64,000 nucleotides of DNA from Ascidiella aspersa (Eukaryota): contig OZ004607.1 of NCBI GenBank assembly GCA_963924565.1, forward strand, positions 6,138,001 to 6,202,000, read 5' to 3'. The notes beneath the pieces are model-generated. The model saw only the letters and a list, made by a program, of their open reading frames with translations. It was not told the origin of the DNA and did not search any database. The position numbers were made by a program, and so were the translations under genes. Within the stretch, counting starts at the first letter, position 1; every line of letters starts with the position of its first letter. Positions 2,572 to 36,994 of the stretch are shown here, one piece after another.

Positions 2572-2663
2572 AAGCGCTTTCGGGTGTGTTTTTGGTGTTA
2601 TGTAAGCTGCTTCCTTCTCTGATTGTGTCAAACGATTTCTTTCCATTTCTTAGTTCTTTAAAG

Positions 2664-5641: not shown

Positions 5642-6194
5642 CAGTGGTCGGCAACCGCCGGTCCGCGAGGAGTTCGTTACTGGTCCGTAGCAGGGTTGCC
5701 AGATTAAAATTTTGATCAAAACCCAAAAGCGTACATAAAAGGTCGTAAAAAACCTAAAAATCTATTAAATGTATTTTTATATTCAAAACACATTATCTTT
5801 CGTTGAAATATACTTTATGGTTGATTGGTATTATAAAAAAAAACCTAAAGTATCAAGCACTCGTGAGGGGACCATATGAGTTACATAGCACGTTTACAAC
5901 ATCCGAAAATGCATTTTTATCGTAAAATTTAATCCTGGTACATACAATATATGAAAAACGGACCATATATAATGTGTTTTTGATGTTCAAGCGTGCCCAC
6001 ACAGAAGTGCAATAGAATCAAACAATGCTTATAAACAATGGAAATTTTCAAAAAGCGCATGCATTTTAATTAGTACATTGAAAAAAGTTGTTGTAAATTT
6101 CCTTTCCTGGACATTTGCTGTTTTTAAGGCCGGTCCGCGAAAAAATTTCAGTTTTAAACCGGTCCGCAGTGTAAAAAAAGGTTGCCGACCCCTG
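5642..6194. mobile_element. hAT-type MITE, palindrome-arm copy
   Basis: Reverse complement of 2664-3216 with the same TSD. Confidence 0.85.
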
Positions 6195-6285
6195 CTTTAA
6201 AGAACTAAGAAATGGAAAGAAATCGTTTGACACAATCAGAGAAGGAAGCAGCTTACATAACACCAAAAACACACCCGAAAGCGCT

Positions 6286-6291
6286 TTTATT
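6286..6291 (-). promoter_or_regulatory. Poly(A) signal AATAAA overlapping the stop codon (mirror at 2567-2572 +)
   Basis: aag aAA TAA Aag followed within ~10-30 nt by a GT-rich tract (gggtgtgtttttggtgttatgt). Confidence 0.55.
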
Positions 6292-9200
6292 TCTTGTGTG
6301 AAAATATTTCTTTAACTTGGTACTCGGTCTGATTGTGGGCGGTGATCTCGAACAGGTTGCTGACGAACCAACAGCTCACCTGTTCTTTCGTGTAGGTGTC
6401 GTACATCGTGTGGTTCACAACTTGAGTTGCGTGGCTCCTGCAAAATAAAAAGGTTCGCGATGAGATGTTCGATAATATCGGATCTGATACTGAGTGTATC
6501 GGTGCTCGTCCGATATACCCGAGTGGTATATCGGTGTCGACCAGATGCTAAATTAATATAGGATTTTCAGCCATGGTTTACAACTTGGGGCAACTATATT
6601 TTTTGTCGTAATAACCTAGAAAAAGGCGTTTGAACGCTTCAATTTAATCTATTTTGCATTTTTGACCATAGCTGGTTCAGGGTCGCCTTACTTTTTGTCA
6701 AAAATATCGGGTATCGGAACAATGTCAAGCATTGGATATTCCTATTCACGATAACAGATCTGCAAAAGTAACGATTCTGTTTTGTTGCCTAAACTTTATG
6801 CCTATTGAAGTGCTCCATTCCGTAAGGCTGGCGACTATGCCGTAAATATGAACCGTACCGTGCCTTCAAAAAAGCTTGATGAAAGTTTAATAACATATTT
6901 TTGTGTGTACAGCACCGAAAACATGTCAAATTTTATGCACAAAAAAAATTACCGAAAAACAAAACAATATTGAAAATCTAGGGCCTTTAGGATACTCTCA
7001 ATTCAGTTTTAGATTAATTCTTTCTTACCACAAACAAAACACACTTGACTTGGCCTCAAGTTATAGCCTAAAACTTATACGTTTGAGAACCACAGATACG
7101 CAGGATCCCAAACCATTTTATCAATAAAACACTGCCAATGTTAATCTCTATCGCTTAGACCAGTGTTTCGCAACCTTTTTTGGCTTGCGCCACTCTACAG
7201 AAATTATAAATAGTTCGCAGCACCCTTGCTCGTATTTTTGCTGACTGGTTAACAGTAGCGTTGCAAAAAACGAGATTGAAACAGCGCATTAACTGTGCAA
7301 CAAGGTTGAAAAAACACCAATAAACCAAAAATTGGAATCCTAAAGAATTCAAAGTATCTCTCGGCACCCTTGAGCGTTAAAAATGGCACCCTAGAGTGAT
7401 TGACTTAGAACCTGCTGCGCCCGCTTTATTGTTTTTTGCTTTATCTGTTAAATCCATTAAGGACAAACCTCATCTTCAGCGTTGCAGTTCTTGAGTTTGG
7501 CTTGAGGTCGAGGGCAACTGTCCGAGCACGCCGAGGAAACTGTCCGAGCACGCCTCCAGCGGCTTGCGACAAGCCCTTGTTGTTGCTCACAGAAAAGTCA
7601 AGGTGGTCGCGGAACGTGCGCTTGGATAGTCGGAATTTGGCGAACACCTACATAAAACTATCACGTCAGTTCGTGAATGATATGCACAATATCTTTGAAA
7701 ACATACTTTTTTTGGTTGAAAAGTAAGAAGCCCAAATTAAAAATTGAAAGCATCGCGCTTCAAAAAACGACGCATTTGGTATTCATAAATACAAGATCGT
7801 CTGTGGGATAGATTGTTTTGGAAATTAAAATAGTTATGAGAGGGGTTCTTCGGTAAAGCCATCTTATTGTCAAAATGTATTTTTTCTTGCATATCGCGAT
7901 TGACCGAGTCTGATTTCAAATGACAGTGCTGTTCATTCAATCGATTTTAGTTTTGCTATTGATGTCAAAATGTATACCTGAAACTGCAGAGACATGTCGA
8001 CCGTAATGGTGAACAAAGAGCTTCGTTTCGAAATGATCTTGACCTCGAACTTGACCCCGCCCCGTAACCTCGACATTGTTTGGTTGCTCAGAAGTTGAAG
8101 GACGTTTCGATTCCCAATATTTACGACAAGGAACCTGGGACTAACCTGAAAAGTAAATAAACCCTCGCTTTATTTTTCAACTCTAAACAAACGAACATTA
8201 AAATGATAACTGTTTTGTTGTAGTTAATGAACGTAAACCCATATAAGGCAGAGATGCATGAATGACAAAACCGTTGTAATTTTATTCACGTAATAACTGG
8301 TTGTAGCTCTGAAATATATCGTTTAGATATTTTAGTTTTACTACATAAACGTCGATGGAATAATTTGATTTGTCGAGAACTTACAGATGTCAAACATGGC
8401 TAAATGGGTAAAACCCTAAAGATCCATAAGTTTGCAAAAATCCATCGGGACAGTACCAAAGTCAACCCACTCGTTTATTTCTATAAGCTCTTTGTCCAGT
8501 GGATATTAACCGGGGTGCTGCGGCACTCTAGGGTGCCATTTTCACCTCTCAAGGGTGTTGAAAGATAGTCTAATTTAGTTAGGATTCCATATTTTGCTTT
8601 ATTGGTAAGCTTCTTGATACAACTTTTTGTGTACGATGTTTTGACGTTGCGAAACACTGCCTTGGCCCAACTGCTAGCCATATTGTCATAATCAGCTTCT
8701 TCCTGATCAGTTATTGTCGCCCAGTACACTTAACGTACATGTTAGTTAGCACCTTTTTTCAGTACATTAAAACACGTGTTAAGCAACACTCAACCAAGCA
8801 AGTGTTCGTATACTTACAAAAATCGTCATGTTGTGCTTCGTCAGCACAATCCCGACTTCACCCAAGAAACTTGGTTTGGTCTTGTTACTGGCGCCTGGCA
8901 CGTCTAACAACTTTACGTTTACGAACACGCCAGAAGCCTTGTCGGCTATGATGTTGTACATCTGCGAATAAAATAAACGCATGTACACACGTTAAGTTAT
9001 GCATACGGCGTATACAAAATACGCTATGAAATTGTACCAAGGGCGTCGAATTGCAGGCATTTGAATGTACCTTAGATTTCAAAATTATAGTAAAAGCATT
9101 TAAAATTTACTCCTGAGATTAATTACTGCTACGAAGTATACTGTATAGCCAACTTAACTAAAGTATAAATCTTCTCGGTGCCCCCCTTTCATCGTTTACA

Positions 9201-12200
9201 TTGTTTTGTTATCTGTTCACTGCAGTGTTTCTCCAACTTGTTAAATCAGACCTCACTTTTGTCTATAAAATAAATGTCGGGCTCCACCAAACTGACTGCA
9301 TGTCGTTAAACATCTGCGTGGTCTGCCACTACGAAAACACCCATGCTCGGTATCACAGAACAATTTAAAGCAGGGTTGCGTAGTCGGAGTCGGGACTCGA
9401 GTAAGACTACATAAAATTACCCGAGTCCCGAGTCCGACGTGCGCATGAGCAGAACTAAATTTAAAACTGATAAGACAGCAAACTGTAAATTGTAAACGTG
9501 GAATAGCAAATGTGAGAATATTTTTCAACCATGTATTGTGAGTGGAAGAATTATGTGACATCATTATATGAATTGATTGTTTAATATCTACATTATTTTA
9601 TTACGTAAATTGGTGAAATACTTGCTGTAGCATAGAGTCGGAACCGGACTCGTACATTTAGCCTTTGTCGGACTCGGGATTAGGCAATCGGACTCGGGTT
9701 CCTTTTTGGGGGGCTTAAGTCGGACTCGATTTATTTTTAGACCAACTCCAGCCCTGATTTAAAGTGTAGTGATATCTCACCTCGCTATCCTTGCCGTGCC
9801 AGTTGAAGCAGATGGCGATATTTTCGTTCAGGTCGACCAGAATGTGCGGGTCGCCTGCTATTACCATTCGATCCCGCGACGAACCGGACACGGGTGGTCG
9901 GGCAATGGAAGGGGGTGGACGGGCGATTAGCGGGACAAAATCAACTGTGACTGGAGGTGGTTCCTCCCACGTAATAATCGTACCTGCAGATACGCCGCAA
10001 TGGTTAAGCGGTAATTTACATTACAGATAGTCAGTAGTTCTCCAAAACACCCAGGTGTGTATACTTAAAGCAAAACGTGCTGGGTCAAGCTTTGTCCTAA
10101 AACCCAAATTTGAAGACACGTGAAACAATTAAATGATTTGCTGAGCACAATTATAAAAGTATAGAAAGAGCATTAGGAAACGTTTATTATAGGCACATTT
10201 TTGACTAAAAAAAAAACACTTTCGAGAAAGAATTACAAAGCCTACATTGCAGCCAACACGGATAAATTAGGCGTATATGTTTTGGCAAGCTGTAATATAG
10301 TAGTATGCCGATCAACGGTTGCTTTTGTTTCCTTAGTTTTGTGCAAGGTGTCAAATGCCCTAAAAATGATTCAAGTTAATCATGCCTGGTGCAATGCTTA
10401 TGGGCCCGACCTTAGCGGTGAGGATCAGTAATTAAGTCAAGTCAACGCATTCACTAGGGTTGGCCAACATCAGTCTGTAGATTAACTGCGTTCGTAGTTT
10501 AGTATACCTAGGTCTTCAGTGTTCGCGAGAGTAAGCGATACTTCCAAACTGCATTCTATGAACCTGTTTGGCTTTTCGACAAACATATTTAGCTGAAGAA
10601 ACATTGGCGAAAACGGACTGATGAGTTATAAAAGGAACGGAAAATGGGGATGGATGTTGCAAGTCGCAGCAAAGACAGCATTCGTTCTGTAGTTTTTTCA
10701 TTTAAAATAAAGCTTTACGCTTTAAGTTACAAAGTATAACCGTTTCTAGTGAGAGCAGTTTTTGGAGTTCTATATCAGTTTCACTTTTTGATTTTTAAAA
10801 AGGTTTTTTTTTCGTTTTTTTTTTGTGGACAGCTTTAATAACAAATACTATCCGGTTACGGTAATCGTTTAAAATGTATCCGGATATCAGATGGCAAAAA
10901 AAGTCCTCGGTTAACTGGTTAGCCGCTATCCGGATAGCACAACTCTAGCCGTCACCTGATTAGACTTTACCGTGAAAATCTAACAGTTGTCACAAGCGAG
11001 AAACCAAAAAGTGTAGGCTAGAGCGATGGGGAATCTTACCGAACCCGCCAGCACCTACAACCAATGCTGCTAGCCTGGGAACAGACGTGAAGGCAATCGT
11101 TGTGGTAGTAGGAGCAGCTGTGGTGGTAAGGGCTTCTTCCAGCTCCTTGATGTCTTCCGGCTTAAGGACGATCATGGAAGTGATGCCGGGCGTCACAAAG
11201 TCGAACCTGAGGAGAAGTTGTTTTGTAAACACAAGTTTTGTAAAGAGTTCATTTTAAAATGAATTAAGTCCCAGAAAAATTAGGTCGAAGTCAAGTCCAT
11301 TTTAAAAGAACTTAAGTCCAAGTCAAGTCATTTTTAATAAATAACAAGTCAAGTCCTAGTCAAGTCATAATTAGAGCAAAGTCAATTTCTAGTCAAGTCC
11401 TTGTCATAAAAGTGAAACGTTAAACTATTTTAATTGGTAAACTACTCCTATTATGAGCAGTAACTAAAAAATAACACGAAACGCAACATAAAGCAAGCAA
11501 ATTGTTTTATGTTCAAAACTTGAGATAAATAACCCAATTTTATAATTAAAAAATCATTTCATTTGAACCCAAGTCATTTGTCAACACTTTTAAACAAATG
11601 GTATAGTTTGGCTGTTGGAACCTTGTTAATTGTGGTATTTTGAGGGGCACCGAAGCGACTTGTTAGAGTTTAGAGTTTAATTGTGTATATTTTGTTAGCG
11701 GATAAAAACTTCGGATCATAATGGTTGGAGGTATTTGTAGTAAGACGTAGTAAGAATATCAAAGCCCATACAGAAGTAGGAAGCATTATAAACGTTTCGA
11801 ATAACTCTTTATTCATTTTCAACATAGTCATGTTGAATCAATAAAACAATGTTGAAAATGAGTAAAGAGTTATTCCATTTGTTCAAAAAAACAAAACTGT
11901 TTACTAAATTCAGAGCCCGTGCGATGAACTTTTCAATTTTTAGAAAATTGCATCTAAATGCTTTACATGATTACATTAGCGCGAGGAAAGTGTTTTCTCT
12001 TCTTTTGAATGTTTATGAAGATATAATTTGGATAATTTCAAATTGTTTTTTAAGACCTACATATAAACACAGTATAAATGAGAGTATAATAGCAACATTA
12101 AAAACGTAAAATGTCACAGACACACTTCAGTTATTCGTTGAGTTAATTATTCGCAGATGCTTACTGCAAGGATCGGTTCAAAGCGATTTTCTTAAGGTTC

Positions 12201-15200
12201 TCCTCAATGGTTTTGTTTGTGGTCGCGTCGATTTGACGAAGAAGGTGTTTGAGTTGCATGAAAACATGTAAACGCTGAGTGAAATTCAACACCTGAGGAA
12301 ATAAACGTATTTCAGTCAATGTTGTAAAAGTCATTTTGATGACTTAAGTCCAATTCAAGTCTTTTCGAATAGTCCCATTTCGAAGTCATCGGTTGCCCGA
12401 GTCAAGTCCCAGTCAAGTCATAATTATGGCGAGTCAACTTCAAGTCAAGTCTGTGTCATAAACAATACTTTTATACTACTAAAACTGGTAAACTTCCAGA
12501 ATTATCTAGTTGTCCAAGGTTGCTTAGTAGGGCGTTTGTTGCGCGAAGTGCACAACCTTGTACGTGACTTTAGGTGACCTTGAGTGACCGAAAGTGTGCG
12601 AAAGTGTTCTGAAGCAAACAAATATATAACGTTGCATTTGTCAATGGAGTTTCGTTGGATTATGGCTATGCGTATTGTTGAATTTCAATTTCATTTCATG
12701 AAAGACAAACGTTTTTGGAATTTACGTAGAATTTTAGATTTTTATAATGACATAAATTATTTGAGAGGAATCAGGTGGCACTATGTAAAGACAAATTGTA
12801 TTGAATTCTCGACAAGCTTTCGTACAACCGTGCTCCATCAAGTAGAAATGAAAATAGCTAAAATGCACGTAAAAGCAAAAGCACTAGTAAAAGGCTATAA
12901 CAATATTGAAGACTAACATATCCATAAACATATGTTTGGAAAGACGTGTGCGACTGACGAAATAACAATACTAACAGGAGGTCTGCGCTTTAAACTACGT
13001 TGGCGATTGCGTGTAGTAAGGCGAGCTACGAGGCGTAATGTGACATAATTACACGCGCTTGTGCTTCAACGTGTATTTTAATTATTTTTATTTCTACTTT
13101 GACCTGATGAAGCACGGTTGTGCGAAAGCTTGTCGAGAATCCAATACAATTTGTCTTTACTTAGTTTATTAATGACCTAAGTTGTCTGGTGATTTACATA
13201 GAGCTGATTTCAAATCACTTTTATTCCTCGTTTTTATTGATTGGATATTAGGTGCTATATCATTTATTGGCTTCAAAACAACACAAAACACATATACTTC
13301 AAACCACATATACAACCACATTGTTTATACTTTGTTTAAACGAAATAAAGTTCATATACAAGTATTTGGAATGATTTATTTTACCATTTATCTCTATTTG
13401 GGTACACTTTTATCTCTATTTGGGTACATAGTATATTAGTCCTCATATTCGTCCTTCTATTCGTCAGTACAACGAAATACAACGAATCAATGTACACAGT
13501 TCAGGTGTTATGTATCAACTTGATTTATTTGAACATTATAGTGAACTGATTAGAGAAAGTGCTAGCATGGAACTTCAAAATAATTATGTTATCTGACAGT
13601 GGTCGTTAGGTTTAAATAACATTGTATTGCTCCATACGCACCCATGATATTAAATTGTAATTTGACGCTACTCATACGAACAGGACATTTTATTTTCCTA
13701 TACGAGTAGTCTATTCGAAAATGAATGTTGTGTGCAATATATGCGCCTAATTCAAAAATGAACGTAAATTCATTAGGGCTATAGCAAGTGATAGCTGCTA
13801 ATGCCTTCTCGTTATAACTCAGACCAAAGAGATTGTTAAAGTCTCTTTGCTCAGACTGATCATTTTGGTCTAATTGATTTTTAATTGCCTGTATAGCAGT
13901 GTACATTCTTCAGTTTGAAAACGATTTTAAGTGTTTATAAGCACTTTGAATTTGTAGCTGATAAGAAAGGCGATTATTTTTGGACCTAAAAATTAAGAAA
14001 TTTTGACAAATTTTACCTAAAAATAATTTATTTTGACAAAATTTTGACCTGTTAGAAATACATTGATTTAAATAACCTAGGCGTCTTTAATCACGTGTTT
14101 TTTATACCTTATATTGCTCCAATGAAGATATAATACGGTTAATGTGACTTTTGAATATAAATCAAAACTAATTTTTTGATGAAATTGAACAATAAATTAA
14201 AAAAAAAAACTGAACGACCAATTGCAAAAAGCTGACTATAGTTTTTCTTTTAATTTTGTAAACGATTGATGTGCATTTTTATTCGATTTTGACTTAAAAA
14301 AATTCTAACAAATTTTGACCTAATATGTAAATTTTGAAAGCATTAGAATTTGCACAACTTCGCAAACACACTCCTGACCTTAAGGCCGTAAAAATCAAAA
14401 TATTGTCTTCCGGAATGCCTAACCATGTCGTTTAACTGCTTGAGAATCTGACCTGTGATTGGTTAGTTTAAACTTACGGCTTCGAGTGTTTGGATTAAAC
14501 TACATTTTCATAAGTATTTGGTTGGTCAATTACAAGTACGTGTTTGTGTGGCAGATTTATTTGTTATTCGCATTTTGTGTCGAAGCAATGTTAAACTCAC
14601 CTTAGTGTTGTATATTAATCAGCGTTTTTCTTTTGAACATTTCCCTTTCGTGAGCCTTTGGGCTTGTGTATTTCAGACAAGCAATTCGCTTAAAAACTAC
14701 CCTTCTTTATTGTCCTAGAGTGCGCTGATATATTTGTAAGTGGCTTCTGCATTATGCTAACTGAGTGTTTCTCAGCCTTTTATGGCTAGCGGCACGCCTC
14801 AGAAATAATAAATAGATTGCGGCACCCGTACAAGATTTTTCTGTGGGTAATTTACTATAGTGTCACTTAATTAACTGAACTGGAACAACACACATCAACT
14901 CCACACAATGTAGTGGTTATAATTGGATTTATTTCACTCTAATCTTTTAAAAAAGTTGTAAGAGTTGAATAAAATCCGATTCTTAAAAATTCTCAAATTT
15001 CTCTTGGCACCCTTAAGCATTGGAAATGGCACCCCGGTTGAGAACCACTGTAGGCTACTAACTTGCTCCGCTGATCTATAGGTTAAAACTGGTTGTTCGT
15101 TCATCAATTAATACTATTCTAATCACCTTAGTCTATTGTGGTTGGCTCGCGAGTTAGTCACGCAACCTGGGTTTGGAGTCAAAAGAAAGTGTTAATTAGA

Positions 15201-18200
15201 ACGCCCTTCTATTGTATAAAGAACTTAAGTTCAACTAGCTGACTCGAGCCCCACACTACCTTGTCTTCGTCGTCGCAAACACCGATCGACCTCGGTTGAA
15301 TGTCCTCCGTAAAGACCTTCTCTGTTGTTCGTGTTCTTCCTGCAATTAATGCGAATATATTCTAGTATCGTACATAATTTGTTGGGCAATTATTTTTTGA
15401 CTTGGCAAAAAAGTAAGAACATTTTTTTATCATGTTAGGTCATAATTTTTCAAAATTATTTAGATAATGCACAAAAATGGAATATAAAATTACCAAAAAC
15501 TGTAATGTTTGCATATTAACAGACAGTAACAGCTGGATAATTCTAGTTTTCTAATTCAATAAATTAGAGCAAAATACGTCTAATATAATTCAGATTTTCT
15601 CGAAAATGCTACTTTGTCCAACAGCATTTTTTTATTATTTTACCTTTTCAAACAGCATTATTTCTCAATCATTACAAAGAATTTGAGTGATTTTTTCTGT
15701 CTAAAAAGCATATGCTATGCTAAAACATAAAATTAGCACACAAATATTACTCATTCCCATTATTATGACAATAAATTGCGACTTAAATCAAATTGATTGT
15801 GAATAGGCCTAATTAAGTGTAATTCGGTAATTCTAATTCTTAATCTAATTTGAAAAGGCTAAAAAATATCTAGTTGTCCAAGTCTTTAAATACAAGGATT
15901 ACAAAGAAATCTGGGATTATACATTTGTCGGAAAACATTTCCCTACAGACCAACGGAGAGCGACCAAGTAATGCCAAAAGCAAATATGGCCGAAAACTAT
16001 GTTATCTCTAACTGAATTTTACAATATGTTTTTATGAGCAACGAAACATGCACATACAAATGTGTGTTAACAACTGTGATCTAGCCCTTCTGAAGCTGTT
16101 TTTTGACCAACGATCACGGCTTTTAGAAACCTCAGTGCAGTTCTAACCTCACTGCAGGCTATTTGTTTTTCTAGCCTGTCCTGCTTGCATCATTGATCGA
16201 CAGATTCGGGGTGTATGTATTGCTCATAATGGCGTGAAATTGAACCTGACGCTCACCTTTAAAGCTATAGGAAATGGTGTCCTGAGAAACTTGCCGACGA
16301 TGGCGAGGCCTTGCCACTATGGTCACATCGTCGGTCTGCATCTGCCCACTAATGATGAGCTCGCCACCGGCGTAGTAAGCGGGGAAAGTGGTCTCGGTCG
16401 TCTCGATCAGCTTATCTCTCTCATACTCCACAACAACATCGGTCAGGATAGGGTTCGAGATCGACTCGAAAAAGGTGGCGATCTGGAAAACGCCGTCAAA
16501 AGCGTTGTGTGGTATTTTTATGTAGAAATAGACTTAAAATGATCTATATAGCTTCCGGAAGTGGTTTAAAATGCCTCATCAACCGTGTGGTAAATAAACA
16601 GTTTTAGTCGACCTTCAGGAGTTTAGTTGACCTTTAGGAGGAACCTGATCCTGTAGCTAAGGATTTTTCTCTTCTCTCTCCTCTATAACGTCTTCCAGGT
16701 GAGCCGGGATTTTAACCCCTGACCCTAGGAACTTGCATTGTTGCGTGGATGAGTTGGAAGTATTGTATTAGGGATGTCCGATAATATCGAATCGAAGACT
16801 ATTCCCGATACAGAGTTTAGTATCGGTACTCATCCGATACTAGGCTGGTACCGCTCCCGATCCGATACCAATTTAACATAGGAATTTCAGTTCTAATTGG
16901 ACATTAGGGTTGAAAATAACTAGGGAAGTTTGGATGTGCTTTAAAGCGTTCACGAACTAGATGTTGAAAAACGACAATGTGGTGCTTTAGCATACCTTTG
17001 TTATTTAATAGGTTTTTGGAAGTAAGGAATTTCCGCAGACAGAAAATGTAAAAAAAAAAATTCTGGCTTTCGTATCAGATGATGGTAAGAATGTTAATAA
17101 CAACAGATATAAAACAGAAACCTTATGAAATATAGGCATCATTAGTTGTTCGAAATATATATATTTGTAAAATTTACAGATCCAATTTAATTTTATATAA
17201 ATGTTTTTCTAAACAGTCTTAACATTATTTGTTATTTATTGGCAAACTTTGAATTGCAGAAAAAATAAAACATTGCCTAAATCTTCTTTTGCGGTATAAA
17301 CTGTGTAGGTCACCTTTATCAGGGGTGCCAAGCCGCATGAAAAAACAGCATGCCATTAAAACGTACCGTAAATTAAATAGCAAATAATAAAAATGCAAAT
17401 AAACCAAAAAGAACTGTCAACTCACTTGCACATGGGCATCAATGTCCATAAAAACTTGAGTTGAAAATCCTTTGTTTTGTGCAGCGATCTTTTTAAGCGA
17501 CTTCATGTCGACTAGACTTCCAAATCCGACAGTGTTGATTGCAAAGCTGTCACTGTAATATATAATCTATGTTAACGGATTATAGGAGATTATTGCTTCA
17601 GAATAACTATTTTTACATTTTCAAGGTAAAAGCTTTATAGGCCTTCATTGTAGAAAAATAATCACAGTTTGTTATATAACACGGAGGTATTGACGTTGCT
17701 TAATGTGTCTATAACCTCTGATCGGCGAAAAATAGGAAATAAAAAAAAAATAGGATAAACCACTGATAAAAGAAACACACGCTAGTTTTATTAAATAGAA
17801 GGTGCGTTTTTATTGACTCTAGAAACAATGTTGTATTGTATCAAGGCAGGGGTGGGCAGCCTTTTTCTAGTATCGGTCCACTATCGGTTAAACGGATAAA
17901 TTACTTGTTCAAGATGTAGACTCCCTTTTCAATAGTTCTGGGGTTTGTGATGCCAATGTTTGGGCGACCATCAGTTAACAGAAGAATCATGTCGGCTGCT
18001 GGGAGAAACCCAAGTGGTCCACCTAGAGCGGTGCCTGAAAAACAAAACCAACCTAAGTATCAGTAAAGAATAATTTTCTTGTATATACTCCGCAACTAAC
18101 TGTGGTAAACGTTGCAATTCAGTGAAAAGGGTACTTTGCGCAATATTCGTCACGTTTGAATTTTCCTATGTGCACCTTGTTTAAAGCTGTAAAATGAGTA

Positions 18201-21200
18201 ACGTTGTTTTGACACAATGTGAAAGGTAAACGGTGTTATCGAGAAATAGTTTTACTTTTTCATAGTAAATATTTAAATCGACTTTATTGGGATTATAGAG
18301 AAGGCCTAAACGTTTTTATCGAGTAATAATCGGTTAATTTGCTGAAATAAATTATTTTTTGTGTTATGTTTTTTGCTTAAAACGAATTAATCCTATGTAA
18401 TTTATTGATTCACTAAAAGTCTGCTTTTTGCGGTGAAAAGGGCCTTTGCCGCAGTTTTCCCGCTTTTCCGCGTAAAAGAGTCTTTAAACATTTAAGCTAA
18501 TGTAATAATATTTTTTTGCTTGAGATAGTTAGCTCCACTTCATTAGTGGGTAACAACCTTTTGGCTTGCGCACACTTGGTTAAATTCAGTTTTTGCTCTA
18601 TTTTCAAGCTTCTTTACACAATTGTTTATGTATCATTGTAGTGCATTTAGTATATATATATATATTCGAGTCTTCAAAGTTGGTATTTTAAATGGAGAGT
18701 TTTCATTTTTCGACTCACTGTCTCGCCCGATCGTTAAATTCGGCGAGATCAGTGGTGGAGCATGGCTCATCAATAATATATTTAGTCATAAATGTTGACC
18801 TAAATAGTGCGCACAAAACTTACATGATTGTTTTCAAGTAAAATATTTCAAGTTAAATTACATGAATTATTTCAAGTAAAATATCTATTGACTCAAAGTA
18901 ATATTAACTTTTCTTACCCTCAATTCCCTTTTTCACGTATTCCCTCAGCGTCAGGATAGCTTCGTATAGAGCTGCCTGTATATTCGTGCCCCCTCGAGGT
19001 CGAATTTCGGCGAGGAATTTGTTTGCCTTACCCACGTTTTCGGGGGTGACTGGAACCATTGTTACGTTGGGTCCGGCCGGTTCCCAGGGCGTCACGGTAC
19101 CGTTGAAAACTAGGATGCCGAAAGCGTCCTGAAAGAGACATGCGTAGCTTTAAATAACAGTGTTGTAAACAAGTCATTTTGAAATGACTAAAGTCCCAGT
19201 CAAGTCATTCGAAAATTTAAGTCCAAGTCAAGTCTTTTCAAATGAATAACAAGTCAAGTCCCAGTCCAAGTCATCGGTTGCCCAAGTCACGTCATAATTA
19301 GAGCAAGTCAACTTCAACTCAATTTCTTGCCTTAAAACTATTACGTCAAAGTGTTAGAACTGGTAAACTCGTCCGATTGTGAGTAATAACTCAAGTAAAA
19401 AAATAAATTAAATGCAAAATATAGCAAGAAAATTGTTTTATTTGCAAAAATTAAAATACATAACCAAATTTTAGATATAAAAATAAAAACACTTTATTTC
19501 AAGCCAATTCATTAGTCCAAAAGACTTAAGTCAAGTCTCAAGAAGCTCAAGTTAATGGTACTCCGACTGTGCAGGAAAAGTTTACAGTTACAATACGATG
19601 TCCGCATTATATTACAGCTGAAAAAAAATAGGCAACTTACAAGCGCTCCAAGATTGGCCAGGATACTGGCCATTGCTGATCTCACTTGATCCATCTTGTG
19701 GCCATACATAGATCCCGAAATGTCTAGAGCGAAGACAACTCTTTTCGGGATCGGCAAGCCTTCTGGGTTGATGAAATGTGCGAAGTAGCTGATAGGGGAG
19801 GAAACTTTCATAAGGTCAAGTAGGTATGGAAGACAACTACAAATTATTTTGGGCGACCCTGGATAAATGTTCACTGTGTACGAGAACTTGTGTATTGTGA
19901 GTTGGACTATAAATATGGAGAAGATTGTAAGCATAATAATTCAACATTGTTTTCCAGTTCTAAACCTGTGAGTTGATCAGATTTTGGCTAACTGCATAGA
20001 AAGTGTTTGGAATCTAGGGAATGATACATTGAACAAGAATAAACAAATAAGTTTATGTAGTTATCCAACTAGATTCTATTAAGAAAGGAGTCAACTATGA
20101 TTCGAGTGTAGGTGCGCATATTTGATTAGCGTCTGATCATAAAAATTGTAATGTTATACGTATTTTCTCAAAGGCTCAATTTATGTCAAAACACAACTAA
20201 AACACGAGACGACAAAACTAATACATTTATCTACGCACTCTTTATTATCCAATTATTGTTACTTTTAACATTAATGGGCAGCTCGAATCAATAACCACAA
20301 GGTATTTTAGCTATCCTAAATCTTGAATCTTGACGTTTTATCCTAAATATTTGTTGTCAGTTTTTAAAGCTATATTCTCGTGTTGAATTGTGTTTGGCGT
20401 TAAGTTCCTGATCATTACCTTCCGGCCAGTACAAAATCTCCCTTCTTTCTGCTCAACGTCAGGTTGTAATCGACTGAAAACTTCCCGTTGAGTCCGAACG
20501 GGGAGATTGCCTCCTGCTGGGTGACCGACGGCGAGTATCTGATTTCGGCCGTGCTCCTGCGCACATTTAACACGAATTAAGGGGCGTTTTCGGCATTGAT
20601 CCGTTGGTATTAGATCCATAGATAGGCAATCAAACTCAGGTCGAATTACGCATACCCTTTGTGGAATTGCAGTGTTTTTCGGATGAACTATAGTTTTTCT
20701 TTTTTACTTAGTGCAATTTCAATTAGTACAGTTTCAAATAAATAGCAGTGCAAAATGAAATTGATTGTTTAAACGTTGGGTTTGCTAGAACTAACGAAAC
20801 AAAGTTGCTGTAAAAGTTTGCAATTTACAACACCACGAAATGTCGATTTAGCTTCGCAATCTAAACTTGAGAAAAATCAGCTTATTTCGTTGGACGCCTT
20901 TGAACACTTCTTCAGGGCAATATAATTGCAACTATAGGCGAAAAAACATATACATGACATACCCGACAAGCCGTAAAAGAAAAACAACAAGGACCACGTT
21001 ATAACGTTGTAATTATATTTCCCTGCAGAAGATTGCCCGAACAGGTAGTCGAAACGTTTGTACATAAATAAGCCTTTGCCGTAAGTCTTTTTTTGTTGAA
21101 CATTAGAATATACTTTTCCTAATTACCTATTCTTCGACACGCTAACTCCGGGTACTTCGGTCGGTCCAGCCACTGCCGTTTGGTCTGTTTCGAAGCCGAG

Positions 21201-24200: not shown

Positions 24201-24450
24201 GAGTATGAACTACGTCTATCGAAAATTACTTCTGTTTTGCTGTCCCGCTAGAGATTTGTTTTAAAATGTGCGTCAAGATTTGTTTGACGAAAAAAACCTT
24301 TTAGTGCTACGTATAGCACATATCTGGCGTTATGTATATTGTATAGTCATATTAAATTTACCACTTACTCGTTCTGCACAAGACTTGTCATGGTCGTTTC
24401 CGCAAACCTCGAGTTGATTTTCGCCTTTACGGTGAAAGTTCCCACACGAG
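6287..24450 (-). CDS. ITIH-like module: VIT domain, vWA domain, T/P-rich linker, GDPH site, ITI heavy chain C-terminal domain
   Basis: VIT: INSRFAETTMTSLVQN, LLPKDAFITAFSMTVDG, TYQELLQRKLG. vWA: YFAHF..PKRVVFALDISGSMYG, GGTNI, LLTDGRPN, VGFG. Further motifs FVTPGITSMIV, AGDPHILV..AICFNW, DHLDF..GGVLGQF and VSCWFV..TEYQVKEIF-stop are all characteristic of ITIH chains. Confidence 0.9.
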
Positions 24451-27400
24451 GGCGCTCGAGCTGCCCGACCACCAACTCGCAGGTTTTGTAAAGCAAGGAA
24501 TTCGATGTTTTGCTCTTCGCTGCCAAGGAAAAAAGTTTTGTGTTGCTGCCAAAATCCTCCTGTAACACGCTAGATGACAGACATCTTTAACACATAAATT
24601 GCTCGCAACGAGTCATTCAATCTTGAGATTATAACTGCGCAGTGTCAGATGAAAATTAGACCTTAAGTTAATCTAACACAGCGCTTCTTAACCTTTTGTT
24701 CTTGCTGCAACACCTTTCAAATCACTAACCAATTCTCGCTTCCATTTCAATTCACCAACCAATTGTCGCAACCCCTTCTAGAATTGCTTAAATATCAAAA
24801 CCATTGTGATTTTATTGTTATACAACTAACTGATGATACAGTAACACAATAATAAAATCTCAGTTAGTTTAACATTGAACTGAGCATAAACATTACAGTA
24901 ATACATTTTCTTTGATTTAGCACCCCGTGGGTGGTGCGAGGGTAACAAACCCTGCTCTAACATTTAAACAAACAGTCATAAAAATGACTTGCTGCTACTA
25001 ACTGAAATATAACCTTAACTAAACTCAATGAGAATGATAACTTCCTCAAGTTACCTAGTGTGAGATCTACAATTTTAGGTAAAACTCACCTGATATGGTG
25101 ATCAATGTAACCGATCCAGCCAGGGCTTTTTCAGGAGCGGTAACCCCGAATGATGCTTCCGCGGTGCCACCGTTTGCGGCAAGTGTCACCGATGAGGGTG
25201 TCACAGCGTCACTGACGTACTCTTGGGTGTCACTCACTCCAAGTTGAAGTGACGTTGCTTTCTCAGCAGTGTTGGTGATCGCAAGGTTGAGTCGTATCGA
25301 GTCCCCGGGTCTGCGAAAGAGATGAATGGTGGAGGTTTAAGTTCATTTTAATTTGTTCGGTTTATTTCTGGTTCTTAAAATGTTACATAAAACGGTTCAG
25401 GTGGTTCAATTTAAATTATGTTCGACTTATTGCCTTAGCTAAATTCTATTTTTTGATATGGATTTTTAATTTTATAAATCTCAATGGAACACATTTTTTC
25501 TAAAAACACATTTTTTAGTATTATCTGTGCTAATCTAACAATGCATCTGCTACGAATCCATCTTGGCATGTAATTTAGAAAAAAATGTTCACTAAGACGT
25601 CAGTTACGCACGTAAGTAAAAATCAGCAGGACCTTTAATATGTTCGGTTGTAACATATATGTACCTCATTTACTTTTAACCATGTTGTCGTATAATTTTC
25701 ACGTAGTGGGCATTCAATAGCTCTTGAAAGAGAATTTTGGCCGAAACAAAAAAAATTGCCGACCACTGCTATGCAGCATCCACGTCTTGCTAATTAAAGC
25801 TAAGTAACTGTACGTGAAATGGTTTGGCAGTTTCTTTCAGCCTGCGTTAACCACTGCATAAAACGCTGAACTGACAAATCAGAGGGCCGCACCTAAATTT
25901 ATGGTCGTCTTATGTCTAACGCCTTATGTTTAATACAGCAACCATGCTGTACAGCATTCACGTATTGTTAATTTGAGCCAAGTTTGGTGTAGCATCCAAG
26001 TCTTGTTAATTAAACCTAAGTTTATTACAGCATCCATGTATTGTTAAATAGAGCTAAGTTTAACACAGCATTCTTGTCTTGTTCATTAAACCTAAGTTTA
26101 ACTCAGCACCCACTTCTGGTTGTTTAAAGCCAAGTAACTGTACGTGAAATCATTTAATAGTTCCCCAGCCTTCGCTACCCACTGCAAAACCACGCTCAAC
26201 TGACAAAACAGACGTCCCTACCTGAACACGGTCGTCTTGATGTCCGAGCACTGGATGCTGACATGCACGAACTCAATGGTCGTGGTCATGACGCGTGAGT
26301 AGGCCACACCTGAGAGGTCTGTCCCCTCTACTAACACGAGCACTGGGTCGGTGGGCGGGCGCACTATCGGGATTCGAAACTCCGGTGGTGGATTGGCCGT
26401 GACTCTGCGTTAAGTAAATACGAAAATCTGTTAATGTTAATAAGGTGTAATCACTAAATGGCCGCGCTTTAACATTTACAATTTGTTTAAGGCGTGTTGA
26501 CAGTGTTGTAATGACTTAAGTCAATGAGTTCATTTAAGTCACTATTCTCAAATGAATTGACTTGACTTAAGTTTTTTGGACAGTATGACTTGACTCGACT
26601 TAAGTCTTATGAGAAATATGACTTGACTTAAGTTTTGGACAAATGTCTTTGGTTGAAATAAAGTTTTAGTAGGGATTTTTTTTAATTGGGTTATTTATCT
26701 CAGTTTTTGCACATAAAACAAATTGCTTGCTATGTGTTGCGTTTTGTGTTATTTGTATGTGAGGTGTTGCTCATAATCAGACGAGTTCACCAATTTTAAT
26801 AGTTTAACGTTTAATTTTTATGACAAGGAGTTGGAACAGACTTGCTCTCATTATGGCTTGGACTTAACTCATTTCAAAATGGCTTGTTTACATCATTGTG
26901 TTTCGGTTGCTATTGCAGCTGTAATCAGTTTCAAGAAAATAAAACAAATGCCCAAAACATTTTCTATTTTTTCACTACTAAAATGTTTTCAGTATAGTAC
27001 TACAGCCAATAATATTTTTGTTGATGTACTTCGTAATCTGATTTAAAGTCCTCTGGCGTTCTTTTTCTTGGGGGTTAAACCAAGTTTGTTGTAAGCCTCA
27101 CATCTTTCAGGAAGAGTAATATTTTATTGAAATCATCGGCTGTGTTTTGTTCGGGCGATTTAACGGTACATTTTATACCTAGCAACTAAAAGAGGCATAT
27201 TTTCTATTTACGCTTCCGTTATGATGCGTATATCGTTTAAGTGCAAATCTACTTGAAGGTCCGTACGACCATCCCAGTGTCCTTGGAGATCAGCTTGACA
27301 GCTCGCACTCTTCCAAGCTTGTTTCCACCGTAAATGTTCAACAGCAAAGTAACTTGGTCCGAAAATAGTGGCTGACCTAAGAATCGATGACATAATATTA

Positions 27401-30400: not shown

Positions 30401-33400
30401 GTGAGATGCCTTGTTACAAGTCTAATGTATTCAATAACAAATTCTGAAATCAATAAAACAAGGTTAAGGCTAATGTTTGCCGAAAAAGGTTTTATTGAAA
30501 ATTGATCGCGGGCGGATTATATTGCTTGGCAGGCCGGGTCGTAGTTTGCCTAGGTCTGTTATAGTTGCTTTAATACATCATTTAATTTTTATCGCAAAGC
30601 ACTTTTAGTTTGCGACCTTTGTATCGAGAACATAAATCATACATCGAAAAAAGATCTGTTCATCGCCGTTTTAAGCGACCTGGACGTAATTGGCGCGCCG
30701 AGATTGTTTTTGAGCAATAGCTCCGAAAGTTGTGCCTTTAATAAGCTAATTATTTTACATTCCTTGAATTGGCTTCAGCAAAGCAAACACACTTTTAGCG
30801 AAAAATACTTGTATATATTTCATGGAAATTAATATTCAGCCATATTAACACCTAATTGCCGAGATCTCTCGCTAAATTTTTCACGAAATAAATCGACATT
30901 CTCTGCAAAAAGAGTCATCGCTTGTCGTCAACATCAATCCGGCTATGTTTTTAATTTTCGATGTTAGCCCATGATAAAAATAGAGGTAAATGCTTAAAAC
31001 CCCGCCACCTACTCGAAAGAACCTCGAAGCTGATATCGACGACGCCCTGCTTGATCGTGCTGTCAATCACTTCGGTAGCGCTGAAAAAAGACGACTTGGA
31101 GACGACGAGGACGTTTCCACCAGTGCTTTCCGCCAGGTAGTTGTACAGCTCCCGGCCGAACTTGAACGAAGGAGTGTTGCAACGTCGATAGCCAAGCGAT
31201 CCCACGGGGCCGCTATACGTAAAACAACGGGGTGTTGTACTAAACATCGATTAGCTGATTAACCATCAAAACATTAACCATACGGGGCTACGTATGGATA
31301 CTGTGCCGTGCGTATTAACCTACTAAGGCTATACCCTTAGGCCCTTGAAAAATTCGGCCCTTTTTTAAGGTTACTTTTTGTTGCAGTCAATAATTTTAAT
31401 TTTTCATGCATGTACTTTATTTTTTATTACTTTTTATAGCTTAGTTTGCAAAACTAGTCCCTTTTCTATTAAACAGCCTTAGGCTTCACCGCTAATTCGG
31501 CCCTGAGTACGAGTAATGTCTATGTATATTTACCAGTGTTGTGATGACTGACTTGACTTAAGTGCACTTAAGTCACTGTTTTTAACTAACTTGACTTGAC
31601 TTAATTCAATTTTTTGAAAAAATGACTTGGATTGAAGTATTTTATTAAATAAAACTGAAAACAAGTTATTTTACAAAAAACTTGACTGGTACTTTATTTA
31701 AATAATTAGTTTACAACAACTGATATTTACTAATATCTGTATAGATTTAATTGACGGGCGGGTCTGGGATTTTTGTGTGCAGAATCATGAAGAATTTAAA
31801 AAACGACGTTACAAAGTTACGTCATAACGTGACGTCAGTATTCAAGTGCTTTTAATCCATTAGGCTCTGGTAACAAGTTTAGTGCAAGCATCAATTTCTT
31901 GAAGATACCGCACCCCACTGGATACACACACGTTCAGATATATGGGTGAAGGTTCGAATTCCCCAGGATATGCATTGTATTAAAAGTTAAAATCTACATA
32001 CTGTATATTCAACATCTAACTTTTTTAGTTTAATATTTTTTAAACCGTCATCCTAAAAATAGGGCTTAACGAAACCTAAAAATGTGATTTTATATATTTT
32101 AACAGCATTTAGGAAGAGTTAGAAAATAATTGGAACATCCAAGCCTATACAGAAGTTATCATTTTGAACGTTTCGAATAACTCTATATTCATTTTCAACA
32201 TCATGTTGGAAATATTTCTGTATGAGCTTTCATATTCTTACTACGCCTTACTACAACCTCGAACCATTACGCCCAAAGTTAGAAAGTAAATTTGCAATAT
32301 CTCATCACTTACGGATGGCTTCTTCCACTACACATGACTTTATAGATATTTTGTGTCAGTAGAAAAGTGATCTTGATATTTTTTCTCTTGGCTTGAGCCA
32401 CGACCAGATCCTGAAATAAAAAAATAAACAATGAGTTAACTTTAAATGCTTGTCTTTTTGGTTATCGTTTAAAATTAAAGCTTAAATAAGGTGTTTTCGT
32501 TTGGAAAGTAAAAGCCAAAGAATCGCGTAAAACTTAGGTCTGACCGAGGGTCGTGAGTTCGAACCTAACAGAAGGCTAGTTGTTTTTCTAGCCTGCCCTG
32601 CTTGCATCATTGATCGACAGATTCGGTGAGACTGCAATAATTTTCGGTGTACTAATGGTACGTAAGCTGTAGTCGTTGGTCCAAAAGCAGCTTTAGAAAA
32701 GCTAGATCTCACTTGTTAACACACATATGTGTGTGGATCTTTTATTGATAAACATAGGTCTGGAAGAAAATAAATTCCAACGTGAAGTCAACAAGATTCG
32801 TGCCCATCTCCACACGTCTCAGTTTTGTTATGGATCCTGAGGGCTTCTTCAATATGCTGTCTTAAATTCATGCGTAATTCGTGAGAATTCCTGTTCCTTG
32901 TAACCTCTAATATGGCGCGTTGGCAAACCGATCGCAAGATAGGATCGATACAGGAGACTGCCACTAACTTTTACGAAGTCCGACGAAAGGCCCGAGGCAG
33001 TTTCCATGCTTGTAGAAAAGGCGCTTAACCGGTTAATCTACTGGGCGGAGCGGAGTGCCGCCTGGGCGCTTAACCGGTTAATCTACTGGGCGGAGCGGAG
33101 TGCCGCCTGTATATTGCCACCGACACCCCCGCATCAAGCAATTCAAACATGAGCTAGATTATTATTTGATACAAGTACAGTAAACCTATAGGAGTCTACG
33201 GCATTTTATGGGTAGTTATGTGCATAAGAAACATAAAATCCGCATTAAAAACGTAAAATTTTTATTTCTTTGCTCAACCGATTCACAGACAAAAACAGGG
33301 TTCAGAAACGAATTAAAAAATCCAACGGTGCCGTTGGGGTAATACTATTATCTAGGAATATTTCATCTCAGTCGAAACCTGTAGTTCGATGTAGTTCCAC

Positions 33401-36400: not shown

Positions 36401-36994
36401 AACATTTAGTTTAACACAAAATCGAACGATCGAGTTCAAAACTCACTTCTCCAGCTCGGTGACGACGAACGTCTCAGCGAGCTTCACGTATTGTTTGCGC
36501 AAGCAGCGCAAGCGCACCCAATCACGGGAGGCGCTGGCCAGGTCGGTCAGTCCCAGGTAAACCAGCACTCCGAACTTGCGCCTCGCCAGTTGCCAGCTCG
36601 ACGCCTGAGCGTAGGTGTAGATGTTGGAGCGCAGCTGGATCAGATTGCGGTCTTGGTCATCTGCCGGGCCGAAGCGTCCAGGGTCGGCGTAGTACATCTG
36701 CAGCAGGGCCTCCTTGAAGTTGGCCGGCGTGGCCGTGGTTCCGTAGAAGGCCTTAAAGAGGGCAGCCGGCGTCGGAGGGTCCACCATCCCCGGGTCTAGT
36801 GAGGTGCCGTTGCCGCGAGGGTTGTCGGCGAAGTAGGAGGCCGAGTACTGGACTGCGGTTCGCGTGAGGAAGTCGAGGAAGTTCTCGCAGCCGCGGATGC
36901 GAGTGTCCGGAGGAACCAACGCCGTGGAGAGGTTGATGATGAGGAGGAGAAGCAGAGGAAGAGCGAGCTTCTTCGCGACGAGCAAGTCACGCAT
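6287..36994 (-). CDS. Secreted VWA7-like / inter-alpha-trypsin inhibitor heavy chain (ITIH)-like fusion protein, ~30 exons, ~1640 aa
   Basis: Exons with consistent phases: 36447-36994, 35361-35493, 34965-35095, 33499-33631, 32313-32410, 31013-31239, 28558-28679, 27959-28063, 27752(or 27769)-27859, 27253-27371(or 27376), 26222-26404, 25090-25310, 24369-24519, 23150-23297, 22290-22429, 21127-21300, 20419-20556, 19641-19788, 18918-19128, 17905-18034, 17426-17552, 16257-16482, 15260-15339, 12165-12292, 11040-11206, 9781-9983, 8818-8961, 7978-8145, 7469-7647, 6287-6437. Signal peptide MRDLLVAKKLALPLLLLLIINLSTA; no internal stop after splicing. Confidence 0.85.
9371..9756. mobile_element. hAT-type MITE with GAGTCG subterminal repeats (related inverted copy ~42268-42670)
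   Basis: Ends cagggttgcg/ccagccctg, TSD atttaaag on both sides, internal repeated gagtcgg/ccgactc. Confidence 0.8.
12785..13160. mobile_element. Inverted repeat (~95-bp arms) carrying the hammerhead; probable Penelope-like retroelement terminal-repeat remnant
   Basis: 12785-12880 is the degenerate reverse complement of ~13060-13160. No convincing RT or GIY-YIG ORF remains. Confidence 0.5.
13098..13137 (+). ncRNA. Minimal type I hammerhead ribozyme (Penelope-like element type)
   Basis: tttgac-CTGATGA-a-gcac(ggtt)gtgc-GAAA-gctt-gtcgag: conserved core, 4-bp stem II, palindromic AAGCTT helix III, stem I tttgac/gtcgag with G-U pairs. Confidence 0.7.
24450..36994 (-). CDS. VWA7/hemicentin-type vWA module (N-terminal half of the fusion gene)
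   Basis: Spliced motifs LAFVVDDTGSMDGEIEAAK, FILVPFNDPGVGP, GGGDTPELAMRGISLA, IFVITDAEAKD, LYNYLAESTGG, FAVPVDTAL, VEGTDLSG..YSR and PGDSIRLNLAITN recall the VWA7 vWA domain (MIDAS DxTGS) and its downstream beta-sandwich domains. Confidence 0.8.
28955..29246. mobile_element. AAGTC-repeat-rich dispersed element (further copies near 11230-11580, 12320-12480, 19158-19550, 22480-22803, 26501-26890, 31535-31730, 44030-44285, 52377-53276)
   Basis: Recurrent cagtgttgtaa/ttacaacactg-like ends with arrays of aagtcaagtca; many diverged copies in introns. Confidence 0.7.
32540..32730 (+). mobile_element. Probable tRNA-derived SINE remnant (second copy ~16060-16235)
   Basis: B-box-like gagttcgaacct followed by ttttctagcctg(c/t)cctgcttgcatcattgatcgacagattcgg, shared with 16166-16210. 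Confidence 0.45.
33020..33109. repeat. 45-bp exact tandem duplication
   Basis: ggcgcttaaccggttaatctactgggcggagcggagtgccgcctg twice. Confidence 0.9.

Follow-up and report, generated by a model that had tools for sequence, protein, structure and literature searches.

The window, by which we mean the whole stretch of 64,000 nucleotides of Ascidiella aspersa DNA analysed here (contig OZ004607.1, positions 6,138,001 to 6,202,000, assembly GCA_963924565.1), carries on its minus strand a gene in which a VWA7-like module runs on into an ITIH heavy chain, and on its plus strand the end of a second copy of that gene. The features, numbered within the window, are as follows.

6287-36994, minus strand: fused gene (copy D-), whole coding span; a stop-free exon chain with colinear tblastn matches of fused proteins
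36995-40600, no strand assigned: upstream region, 94-97% shared with the spacers of head-to-head gene pairs in the array
36447-36994, minus strand: exon 1; ATG, signal-peptide-like N-terminus (MRDLLVAKK followed by a Leu-rich core) and an N-domain of ~180 aa
33499-35493, minus strand: exons 2-4; VWA_4-type vWA domain with a MIDAS-like DDTGS (PF25106, per-exon E 7e-4 to 2e-15)
25090-25310, minus strand: exon 12; most of a VWA7-type Ig-like domain (PF23619 positions 13-83 of 104, E 6e-8)
24520-25089, minus strand: intron 12 (570 nt); stop soon on read-through, one AATAAA
24369-24519, minus strand: junction exon 13; last Ig strand (LLYKTCELVV), 8-residue linker (GQLERPRV), first VIT strand
22290-23297, minus strand: exons 14-15; remainder of VIT (PF08487 profile positions 30-76 and 78-111)
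17426-19788, minus strand: exons 18-21; ITIH-type vWA domain with MIDAS DISGS (PF00092 and PF13768)
15260-15339, minus strand: exon 23 (80 nt); needed by the model for frame, weak homology support
11040-11206, minus strand: exon 25; Thr/Ala/Pro-rich linker, its length varying among copies (net +18 nt in four)
9781-9983, minus strand: exon 26; GDPHILV then CFNW, putative ITIH Asp-Pro cleavage and transfer site
6287-8961, minus strand: exons 27-30; ITI_HC_C (PF06668) and stop TAA at 6289-6287
1-2571, plus strand: 3' end (exons 27-30) of copy C+, tail to tail with the window gene

Organisation of the gene

Using dynamic programming, we found that canonical GT-AG exons chain in a single frame, opened by the ATG at 36994 and closed by the TAA, with 0 internal stops, so that the run of about 30 exons from signal peptide to ITIH stop described in the initial annotation was recovered as 29-30 exons. 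When three tunicate fused proteins (from Clavelina, Ciona and Styela) were compared with the window by tblastn, the matches were colinear with these exons, with E-values down to 1e-49 for exon 1 and of 1e-11 to 3e-13 for the junction exon. The predicted protein contains the motifs DDTGS, DISGS and GDPH, the first two marking the pair of MIDAS-type vWA domains that had been proposed, and its signal-peptide-like N-terminus agrees with the proposal of a secreted product. Pfam domains were searched exon by exon, the joined spliced protein being used only in a local frame check, in the MAFFT alignment and in the tree.

The raw model comprised 30 exons and 1622 aa, and two corrections bring it to 29 exons and ~1590 aa. 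The raw model's exon 5 (32969-33037, minus strand) is probably no real exon: homologues lack any residue for it, three other copies of the gene conserve it at only 89-92%, with indels, and it is missing from one. The acceptor of exon 7 was moved from 31239 to 31212 after comparison of the array copies. Besides exon 5, the weakly supported members of the raw chain were exon 9 and exon 23, the latter matching a Phallusia protein at E 0.018 and being 95-98% conserved and free of indels in the other copies.

The junction between the two halves

The sequence of the junction exon, AKSKTSNSLLYKTCELVVGQLERPRVGTFTVKAKINSRFAETTMTSLVQN, agrees with that given in the initial annotation; the acceptor ttttttccttggcag lies directly before 24519 and a GTAAGT donor follows 24369. 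The upstream exon (25310-25090) stops one base into a codon (..TCA G, then gtgagt), and because this G and the following CG make an Ala codon, the phases match across intron 12. With the end of the Ig domain and the start of VIT sharing exon 24519-24369, the claim that the join is intra-exonic, its acceptor in phase with the upstream donor, holds. The 3' half of the exon encodes VIT profile positions 4-26 (Pfam), and its first half aligns with the final strand of fish VWA7. The alignment with human ITIH4 (E 4e-80) begins exactly at the junction, at ITIH4 residue 29, near its N-terminus. In the Ciona orthologue, as modelled by AlphaFold (pLDDT 79), the last Ig strand (P0019 residues 129-137) is followed by 7 linker residues and then by the first VIT strand (145-156). 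Both the AG acceptor and the GT donor of the junction exon are kept in 7/7 array copies, across which intron 12 has 56 gap columns and the flanking exons have none.

The boundaries usual in the two parent families are both absent here. Vertebrate ITIH chains, of ~900-1250 aa, carry their own signal peptide right before VIT, whereas in the fused chain a VWA7-like module of ~700 residues occupies that place; vertebrate VWA7 stops after its Ig domain, whereas the tunicate frame runs on into VIT within the same exon and so into the ITIH chain.

SL trans-splicing occurs in tunicates. The fused reading might instead be a modelling artefact created from two adjacent same-strand genes, one VWA7-like and one ITIH-like, possibly forming a tunicate operon. 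The acceptor at 24520 is strong enough for trans-splicing, and read-through past the exon-12 donor meets a TAG after 8 codons and then the single AATAAA at 24816. One AATAAA in 570 AT-rich bases is, however, close to chance expectation, no stop precedes the exon-12 donor, and the phases of intron 12 match. Nor does intron 12 provide a first exon for a separate ITIH gene, as no ORF with an ATG and a signal peptide was found in its 570 nt, and the first in-frame ATG past the acceptor sits within the first VIT strand and lacks a signal peptide. The exon that would have to open the ITIH gene also encodes the last Ig strand, and the junction peptide aligns gap-free in 13 proteins, including three on what appear to be transcript-sized, intron-free contigs (see below). 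Two separate genes are therefore, in our judgement, extremely unlikely. The reading as one gene, as opposed to a merge of two gene models, is upheld by the matching phases, by a frame that is open at the junction with neither a VWA7 stop codon nor a second signal peptide, and by the same architecture in other tunicates. Retention of intron 12, with its early stop and AATAAA, may give rise to a VWA7-only isoform.

The VWA7-like front half

The front half shares a VWA_4 domain with a DxTGS motif, Ig_VWA7 and probably GBD_Hemicentin with fish VWA7 (P0030, 941 aa; P0031, 1000 aa), to which it is 26-27% identical over ~510 residues. The DDTGS motif is kept in all homologues, its counterpart in fish VWA7 being DTTGS. 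In a scan of the Ascidiella genome, Ig_VWA7 (PF23619) was detected in 6/7 array copies, the final strand of the domain being the one in the junction exon. The galactose-binding-like domain (PF23560) matches the Clavelina and Ciona orthologues at E 3e-5, just under the cut-off, and is matched by no single window exon. The N-terminal region of hemicentin is built in a similar way, from VWA_4, GBD_Hemicentin and then an Ig domain, but it is a weaker match to the front half than VWA7 (E 5e-22 versus 2e-38), and what follows in hemicentin is a long series of Ig and EGF domains and no ITIH chain.

The description of this half as VWA7-like is thus borne out by VWA_4 and Ig_VWA7 but does not extend to the first 180 residues, where no Pfam VWA7_N is found. 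The exon 1 N-domain is rare and has no Pfam match at E<=1, and an exon 1 query returned only 16 matches among 1.84 billion representatives; VWA7_N (PF25107) and PF23610 were not detected in the Pfam sets of the tunicate fused proteins. Comparison of the tunicate N-domain with the N-terminus of fish VWA7 gave an hhalign probability of 2.3% and a weak shared motif only, and we do not claim homology between them.

The ITIH back half

The back half follows the order VIT, vWA with MIDAS, ITI_HC_C of vertebrate ITIH1-6 (6FPY, ITIH1; 9C4F, ITIH4), with PF00092 and PF13768 matches in exons 18-19, after VIT, and with DISGS aligned to the DxSGS of vertebrate ITIH2, ITIH3 and ITIH6. The orthologues show both VIT and vWA as complete domains. 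Three window exons match PF06668, with a best E of 3e-8, and the orthologues match it at E 1e-23 to 4e-38. A Foldseek comparison of the AlphaFold model of the Ciona orthologue with the ITIH1 crystal structure 6FPY gave E about 2e-46 to 3e-46 and a TM score of 0.72. The DPH cleavage motif of vertebrate ITIH1-6 and the CFN that follows it are both kept in the fused chain, and D, P, H and C-F-x-W are invariant across 10 fused proteins, which makes the GDPH of the window protein a putative ITIH-type Asp-Pro-His precursor cleavage site.

The same architecture in other tunicates

The N-domain, VWA_4, a probable GBD, Ig_VWA7, VIT, vWA and ITI_HC_C follow one another in full-length proteins of Ciona, Clavelina, Styela and Phallusia. 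A search with exon 1 by itself retrieves such full-length proteins from Clavelina (1602 aa) and Ciona (1586 aa), in which Ig_VWA7 ends at residues 704 and 698 and VIT begins at 715 and 708, respectively. The same Pfam set occurs in three further proteins of 1709, 1625 and 1591 aa, on contigs of 5761, 5457 and 5021 nt; because the protein lengths leave no room for introns, these contigs are probably intron-free and transcript-sized. The tunicate fused proteins (1586-1794 aa) resemble the window gene in their full architecture, with 40-47% identity over the whole length, and share with it the junction motif, both MIDAS motifs and GDPH. The window gene differs from them in its species, in being present in seven copies, and in that their database names cover the ITIH part only: in RefSeq/UniProt, fused proteins from at least four ascidian species are called ITIH3, ITIH3-like or ITIH5-like. 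In a tree of the ITIH halves, all fused proteins fall into one clade (SH-aLRT 99), within which the window gene groups with Phallusia as its sister (SH-aLRT 99), a topology that points to a single origin of the fusion.

The published Ciona tunic proteome contains fused-protein peptides at residues 41-51, 153-164, 438-454 and 1287-1296, the ITIH half being represented by one lower-confidence match only (PEP 0.086). With tunic peptides from both halves, the Ciona orthologue is expressed.

A literature search found no paper describing a VWA7-ITIH fusion, a search of the ESM Atlas returned generic VIT clusters only (scores 0.8), and in one metagenome scan only a distant VIT-vWA locus matched. The suggestion in the initial annotation of a lineage-specific architecture not described before consequently stands in part. 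Fused proteins are known from tunicates, in keeping with lineage specificity, and in the literature we found no description; in databases, by contrast, the architecture is already widespread, and the Ciona protein is listed in the tunic proteome. The window gene is a real fusion and belongs to a tunicate family that databases list but that no paper we found describes.

A seven-copy array and a diverged paralogue

The window gene belongs to an array of seven inverted and tandem copies with a regular period of ~70 kb, arranged as head-to-head and tail-to-tail pairs; window positions 1-4284 are the reverse complement of 8849-4566 at 98% identity. All four minus-strand copies are intact and show in-frame indel differences only, and all three plus-strand copies carry frameshifts, their other lesions being the loss of a donor or of an acceptor, or a stop. 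The copies, compared outside C1:6130001-6138000 (which holds exons 22-26 of copy C+), differ pairwise by 1.2-2.6%, with mosaic distances and an overall pN/pS of 0.26 (front half, 0.33; back half, 0.22). Exons 12-14 are free of indels among the copies, the neighbouring introns having 38-138 gap columns. The substitution pattern and the indel-free exons indicate that selection acts on the whole reading frame.

Given how little the copies differ, and that three of them are damaged, copy D- might be a silent or decaying recent duplicate within a fusion family that is itself real. This we consider unlikely: the ORF of copy D- is intact, all its splice sites are canonical, and ~3.6 kb of the shared upstream region is retained; D- is also one of the four minus-strand copies, in which only in-frame indels are seen and to which the low overall pN/pS also applies.

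We think it quite unlikely, too, that the array is an assembly artefact, produced by haplotigs or a mis-assembled repeat from what is truly one gene or one inverted pair. The high similarity of the copies would fit such an origin, as would a gap of 100 N between copies B+ and C- (C1:6068021-6068120), and mis-joins could produce the mosaic distances. Two haplotypes, however, cannot give seven copies, and neither the regular period nor the ordered head-to-head and tail-to-tail pairs suit an artefact. Particular plus-strand copies also share lesions, a changed 3' end of exon 2 being common to A+ and B+ and a -2 in exon 20 to B+ and C+, which fits inheritance through tandem duplication. An artefact of this kind would in any case leave the fusion itself untouched. 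In this array, the recent amplification of a gene, the decay of part of the copies and gene conversion can all be seen cleanly.

Across the genome, ITI_HC_C was detected at eight loci only, namely the seven copies and a diverged paralogue on contig C3. This paralogue, known from match coordinates and loci L008 and L016, is also fused, with its junction in one open stretch. Both observations agree with a single origin of the fusion.

Discussion

We put the probability at roughly 85% that the locus is one tunicate protein-coding gene for a secreted VWA7-ITIH fused protein of ~1,590 residues. According to this reading, an ITIH heavy chain (VIT, vWA with a DxSxS MIDAS, ITI_HC_C) would have given up its own signal peptide and acquired in its place a VWA7-like module, made up of a signal peptide, the N-domain of ~180 aa, VWA_4 with DDTGS, a putative galactose-binding-like domain and a VWA7-type Ig domain, with the two modules joined inside one exon through an 8-residue linker, GQxxRPxV. 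The fusion would be old in tunicates, predating the duplication into two paralogue groups that are both found in this genome, and the group-1 gene would later have been amplified here into the seven-copy array in which D- is an intact copy.

Judged from its domains and motifs, the fused protein may be a tunic or extracellular-matrix protein. By analogy with vertebrate heavy chains, the conserved Asp-Pro within GDPH might be its cleavage site, and the Asp could then be linked to a glycosaminoglycan; the Ig domain, the putative GBD and the pair of metal-dependent vWA sites would perhaps serve as extra binding surfaces for cross-linking. A Ciona stolon adhesive protein with vWFA domains was reportedly described by Li et al. 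in 2019. It is conceivable, though we find it doubtful, that the fused chain is the tunicates' only ITIH-type gene and a covalently attached tunic cross-linker, and that its seven-copy amplification is adaptive, in tunic building, adhesion or defence. In a bolder variant, the fused form may be ancestral to tunicates and vertebrates, with vertebrate VWA7 and ITIH having split from it.

To our knowledge, no proteins other than ITIH heavy chains are transferred covalently onto hyaluronan, and we know of no function for VWA7. Their natural fusion, conserved in tunicates as the sister group of vertebrates, suggests a role for both in the same extracellular process and offers a testable lead for VWA7 function. 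The fusion family is already catalogued and represents no new class of system, and database names such as "ITIH3-like" conceal half of the fused protein. Link-domain loci occur in the Ascidiella genome, an observation that is permissive, and nothing beyond that, for the predicted Asp-chondroitin sulphate/hyaluronan linkage.

Structure of the gene and its junction exon

The initial annotation had described a single gene joining a VWA7-like module to an ITIH chain with the join inside one exon, and the minus-strand sequence agrees with it in acceptor, exon limits, donor and phase: the acceptor ttttttccttggcag lies directly ahead of 24519, the junction exon (24519-24369) runs from AKSKTSNSLLYKTCELVVG to RVGTFTVKAKINSRFAETTMTS and is followed by GTAAGT, and the last base of the upstream exon (25310-25090) opens an Ala codon that the first two junction-exon bases complete. 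The exon chain was built with a dynamic-programming script that draws on splice weights and codon usage and favours tblastn cores with a bonus. The raw chain leads from an ATG at 36994 to a TAA at 6289-6287 through 30 canonical GT-AG exons and contains no internal stop, which bears out the proposed splicing in one frame from the start to the ITIH stop. By comparison with paralogous copies, exon 5 of the raw model is probably not real, and the acceptor of exon 7 is at 31212. The revised model is stop-free (29 exons, 4773 nt, 1590 aa); exons 9 and 23 are weakly supported, the latter an 80-nt exon that forms the sole interruption of the long non-coding stretch made up by introns 22 and 23 (12165-16257, minus strand). 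This joined model served to check the frame and went into the alignments and the tree; database searches were run per exon or with retrieved proteins.

A second signal peptide had been denied for the ITIH half, and indeed the 570-nt intron ahead of the junction exon holds no ORF able to supply a start codon and signal peptide. Reading through the exon-12 donor gives a TAG after 8 codons, and the one AATAAA in this intron is about what chance would yield.

Domains along the gene (Pfam scans of single exons; all minus strand)
Exon 1, N-terminus: signal-peptide-like sequence
Exons 2-4: VWA_4
Exon 12: Ig_VWA7, profile positions 13-83 of 104
24519-24369, junction exon, 3' half: start of VIT, Pfam positions 4-26
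Two exons after the junction exon: remainder of VIT, Pfam positions 30-111
After VIT: VWA
Last exons: ITI_HC_C

Two MIDAS-type motifs are present in the gene. Beyond its signal-peptide-like start, exon 1 has no Pfam match. The N-terminal domain of ~180 aa (36447-36994, minus strand) is very rare: a search of 1.84 billion representatives gave 16 matching proteins, almost all just the size of an exon, and the only feature it has in common with the VWA7 N-domain is a weak motif, AR...G.L..D..S.S..W.

Fused relatives in other tunicates

Two of the 16 exon-1 matches are full-length, a 1602-aa protein of Clavelina lepadiformis and a 1586-aa protein of Ciona intestinalis, named ITIH3 or ITIH3-like in the databases. 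Both carry VWA_4, GBD_Hemicentin, Ig_VWA7, VIT, VWA and ITI_HC_C, with ~10 residues between the end of Ig_VWA7 and the start of VIT. Second genes of Clavelina and Ciona carry the identical domain set, and it recurs in Phallusia mammillata and in several proteins of Styela clava. Three unnamed JGI proteins (1709, 1625 and 1591 aa) have it too; their contigs (5761, 5457 and 5021 nt, respectively) are so short that they leave no room for introns. Fish VWA7 and vertebrate ITIH proteins each match one half only. Word-based searches, too insensitive to exclude one, found no fused protein with a non-tunicate name.

The Clavelina, Ciona and Styela proteins give colinear tblastn matches to the window exons, the whole junction exon included. 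In MAFFT alignments the junction (..ITxTAK..S..LLYKxCxLVVGQxxRPxV..F.V...I.SRFAET..) is gap-free in every fused protein, and the 5' half of the junction exon lines up with the final Ig strand of fish VWA7; the alignment of human ITIH4 with the Ciona protein begins at ITIH4 residue 29, near the ITIH4 N-terminus and exactly at the junction. Modelled with AlphaFold (pLDDT 79), Ciona residues 561-1586 show a strand on LLYKPCHLI, then seven coil residues and the first VIT strand, and in a structure search the model comes closest to crystal structures of ITIH1 (E 2e-46, TM 0.72).

In a tree of the ITIH half, all fused proteins form one clade (SH-aLRT 99) of two subgroups, with the window gene sister to Phallusia and vertebrate ITIH2/3 and ITIH5/6 outside. 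This topology fits a single fusion event that would have taken place earlier than the tunicate duplication. We found no description of a VWA7-ITIH fusion in the literature, as the initial annotation had supposed, but the architecture is not new to databases: RefSeq and UniProt already list fused proteins, and we therefore regard the window gene as a new member of a catalogued, uncharacterised tunicate family.

A seven-copy array

The assembly spans 308.6 Mb, and the window is C1:6138001-6202000, C1 being contig OZ004607.1. Between 5.93 and 6.18 Mb of C1 there are seven occurrences each of exon 1, exon 12 and the junction exon. They mark an array of near-identical fused genes, seven in all, at C1:5930000-6175000, whose right end is window 1-36994; its members are paired head to head and tail to tail and repeat every ~70 kb, and a 100-N gap lies within it at C1:6068021-6068120. 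Wherever sequence was retrieved, the model exons are present in all copies, except the rejected exon 5, which is absent from the neighbouring copy C+. The four minus-strand copies, the studied gene among them, are intact, with in-frame indels as their only differences. The three on the plus strand have frameshifts, an altered end of exon 2 whose donor is gone, the loss of an acceptor and a single stop; some of the defects recur in more than one copy.

Divergence between copies is 1.2-2.6%, and the mosaic of distances suggests that gene conversion has occurred. In the model frame, pN/pS among copies comes to 0.26 over the full length, with 0.33 for the front half and 0.22 for the back half, and exons 12-14 contain no indels, with many in the flanking introns. 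The Thr/Ala/Pro-rich linker exon (11040-11206, minus strand), upstream of the GDPH site, differs in length between copies (net +18 nt in four). The other array units also have the ~3.6 kb upstream of the ATG in common. Window 1-4284, the inverted 3' end of C+, is the reverse complement of 8849-4566 (98% identical), a palindrome over 1-8849 that arises because the 3' ends of C+ and the studied gene face each other.

Other loci in the genome

A diverged paralogue at C3:17929264-17967099 (plus strand; loci L008 and L016) has exon 1, VWA_4, VIT and ITI_HC_C on one strand within 38 kb. It belongs to an "H5-like" group, its exon 1 is 39% identical and its domain order is likewise fused, the junction lying inside a single open stretch with a different following exon boundary. 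An exon-by-exon genome search, of limited sensitivity because of this mode of matching, placed ITI_HC_C at the eight fused loci only, and thus no stand-alone ITIH gene was found. The other VIT loci (C7:12.10 Mb, C1:25.89 Mb and C5:23.65 Mb) are not next to other VWA_4 loci (C4, C6 and C8).

Proposed processing and protein-level evidence

The GDPH-CFNW site is present and conserved. By analogy with vertebrate heavy chains, a chain secreted by way of its signal-peptide-like start would be cut at Asp-Pro and transferred through the GDPH Asp onto a glycosaminoglycan, and might cross-link tunic or matrix. Link (Xlink) domain exons occur at C2:28302336-28309977 and C1:462118-465777, so the genome has hyaladherin-type proteins besides its ITIH-like chains; for the proposed transfer these loci are only permissive.

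A supplement on Ciona tunic proteomics includes the 1586-aa protein A0A1W3JK15 with peptides at residues 41-51, 153-164, 438-454 and 1287-1296, only one of them, of lower confidence, from the ITIH half (PMC7401272). These peptide strings lie at exactly the stated positions in the Ciona protein that we retrieved.
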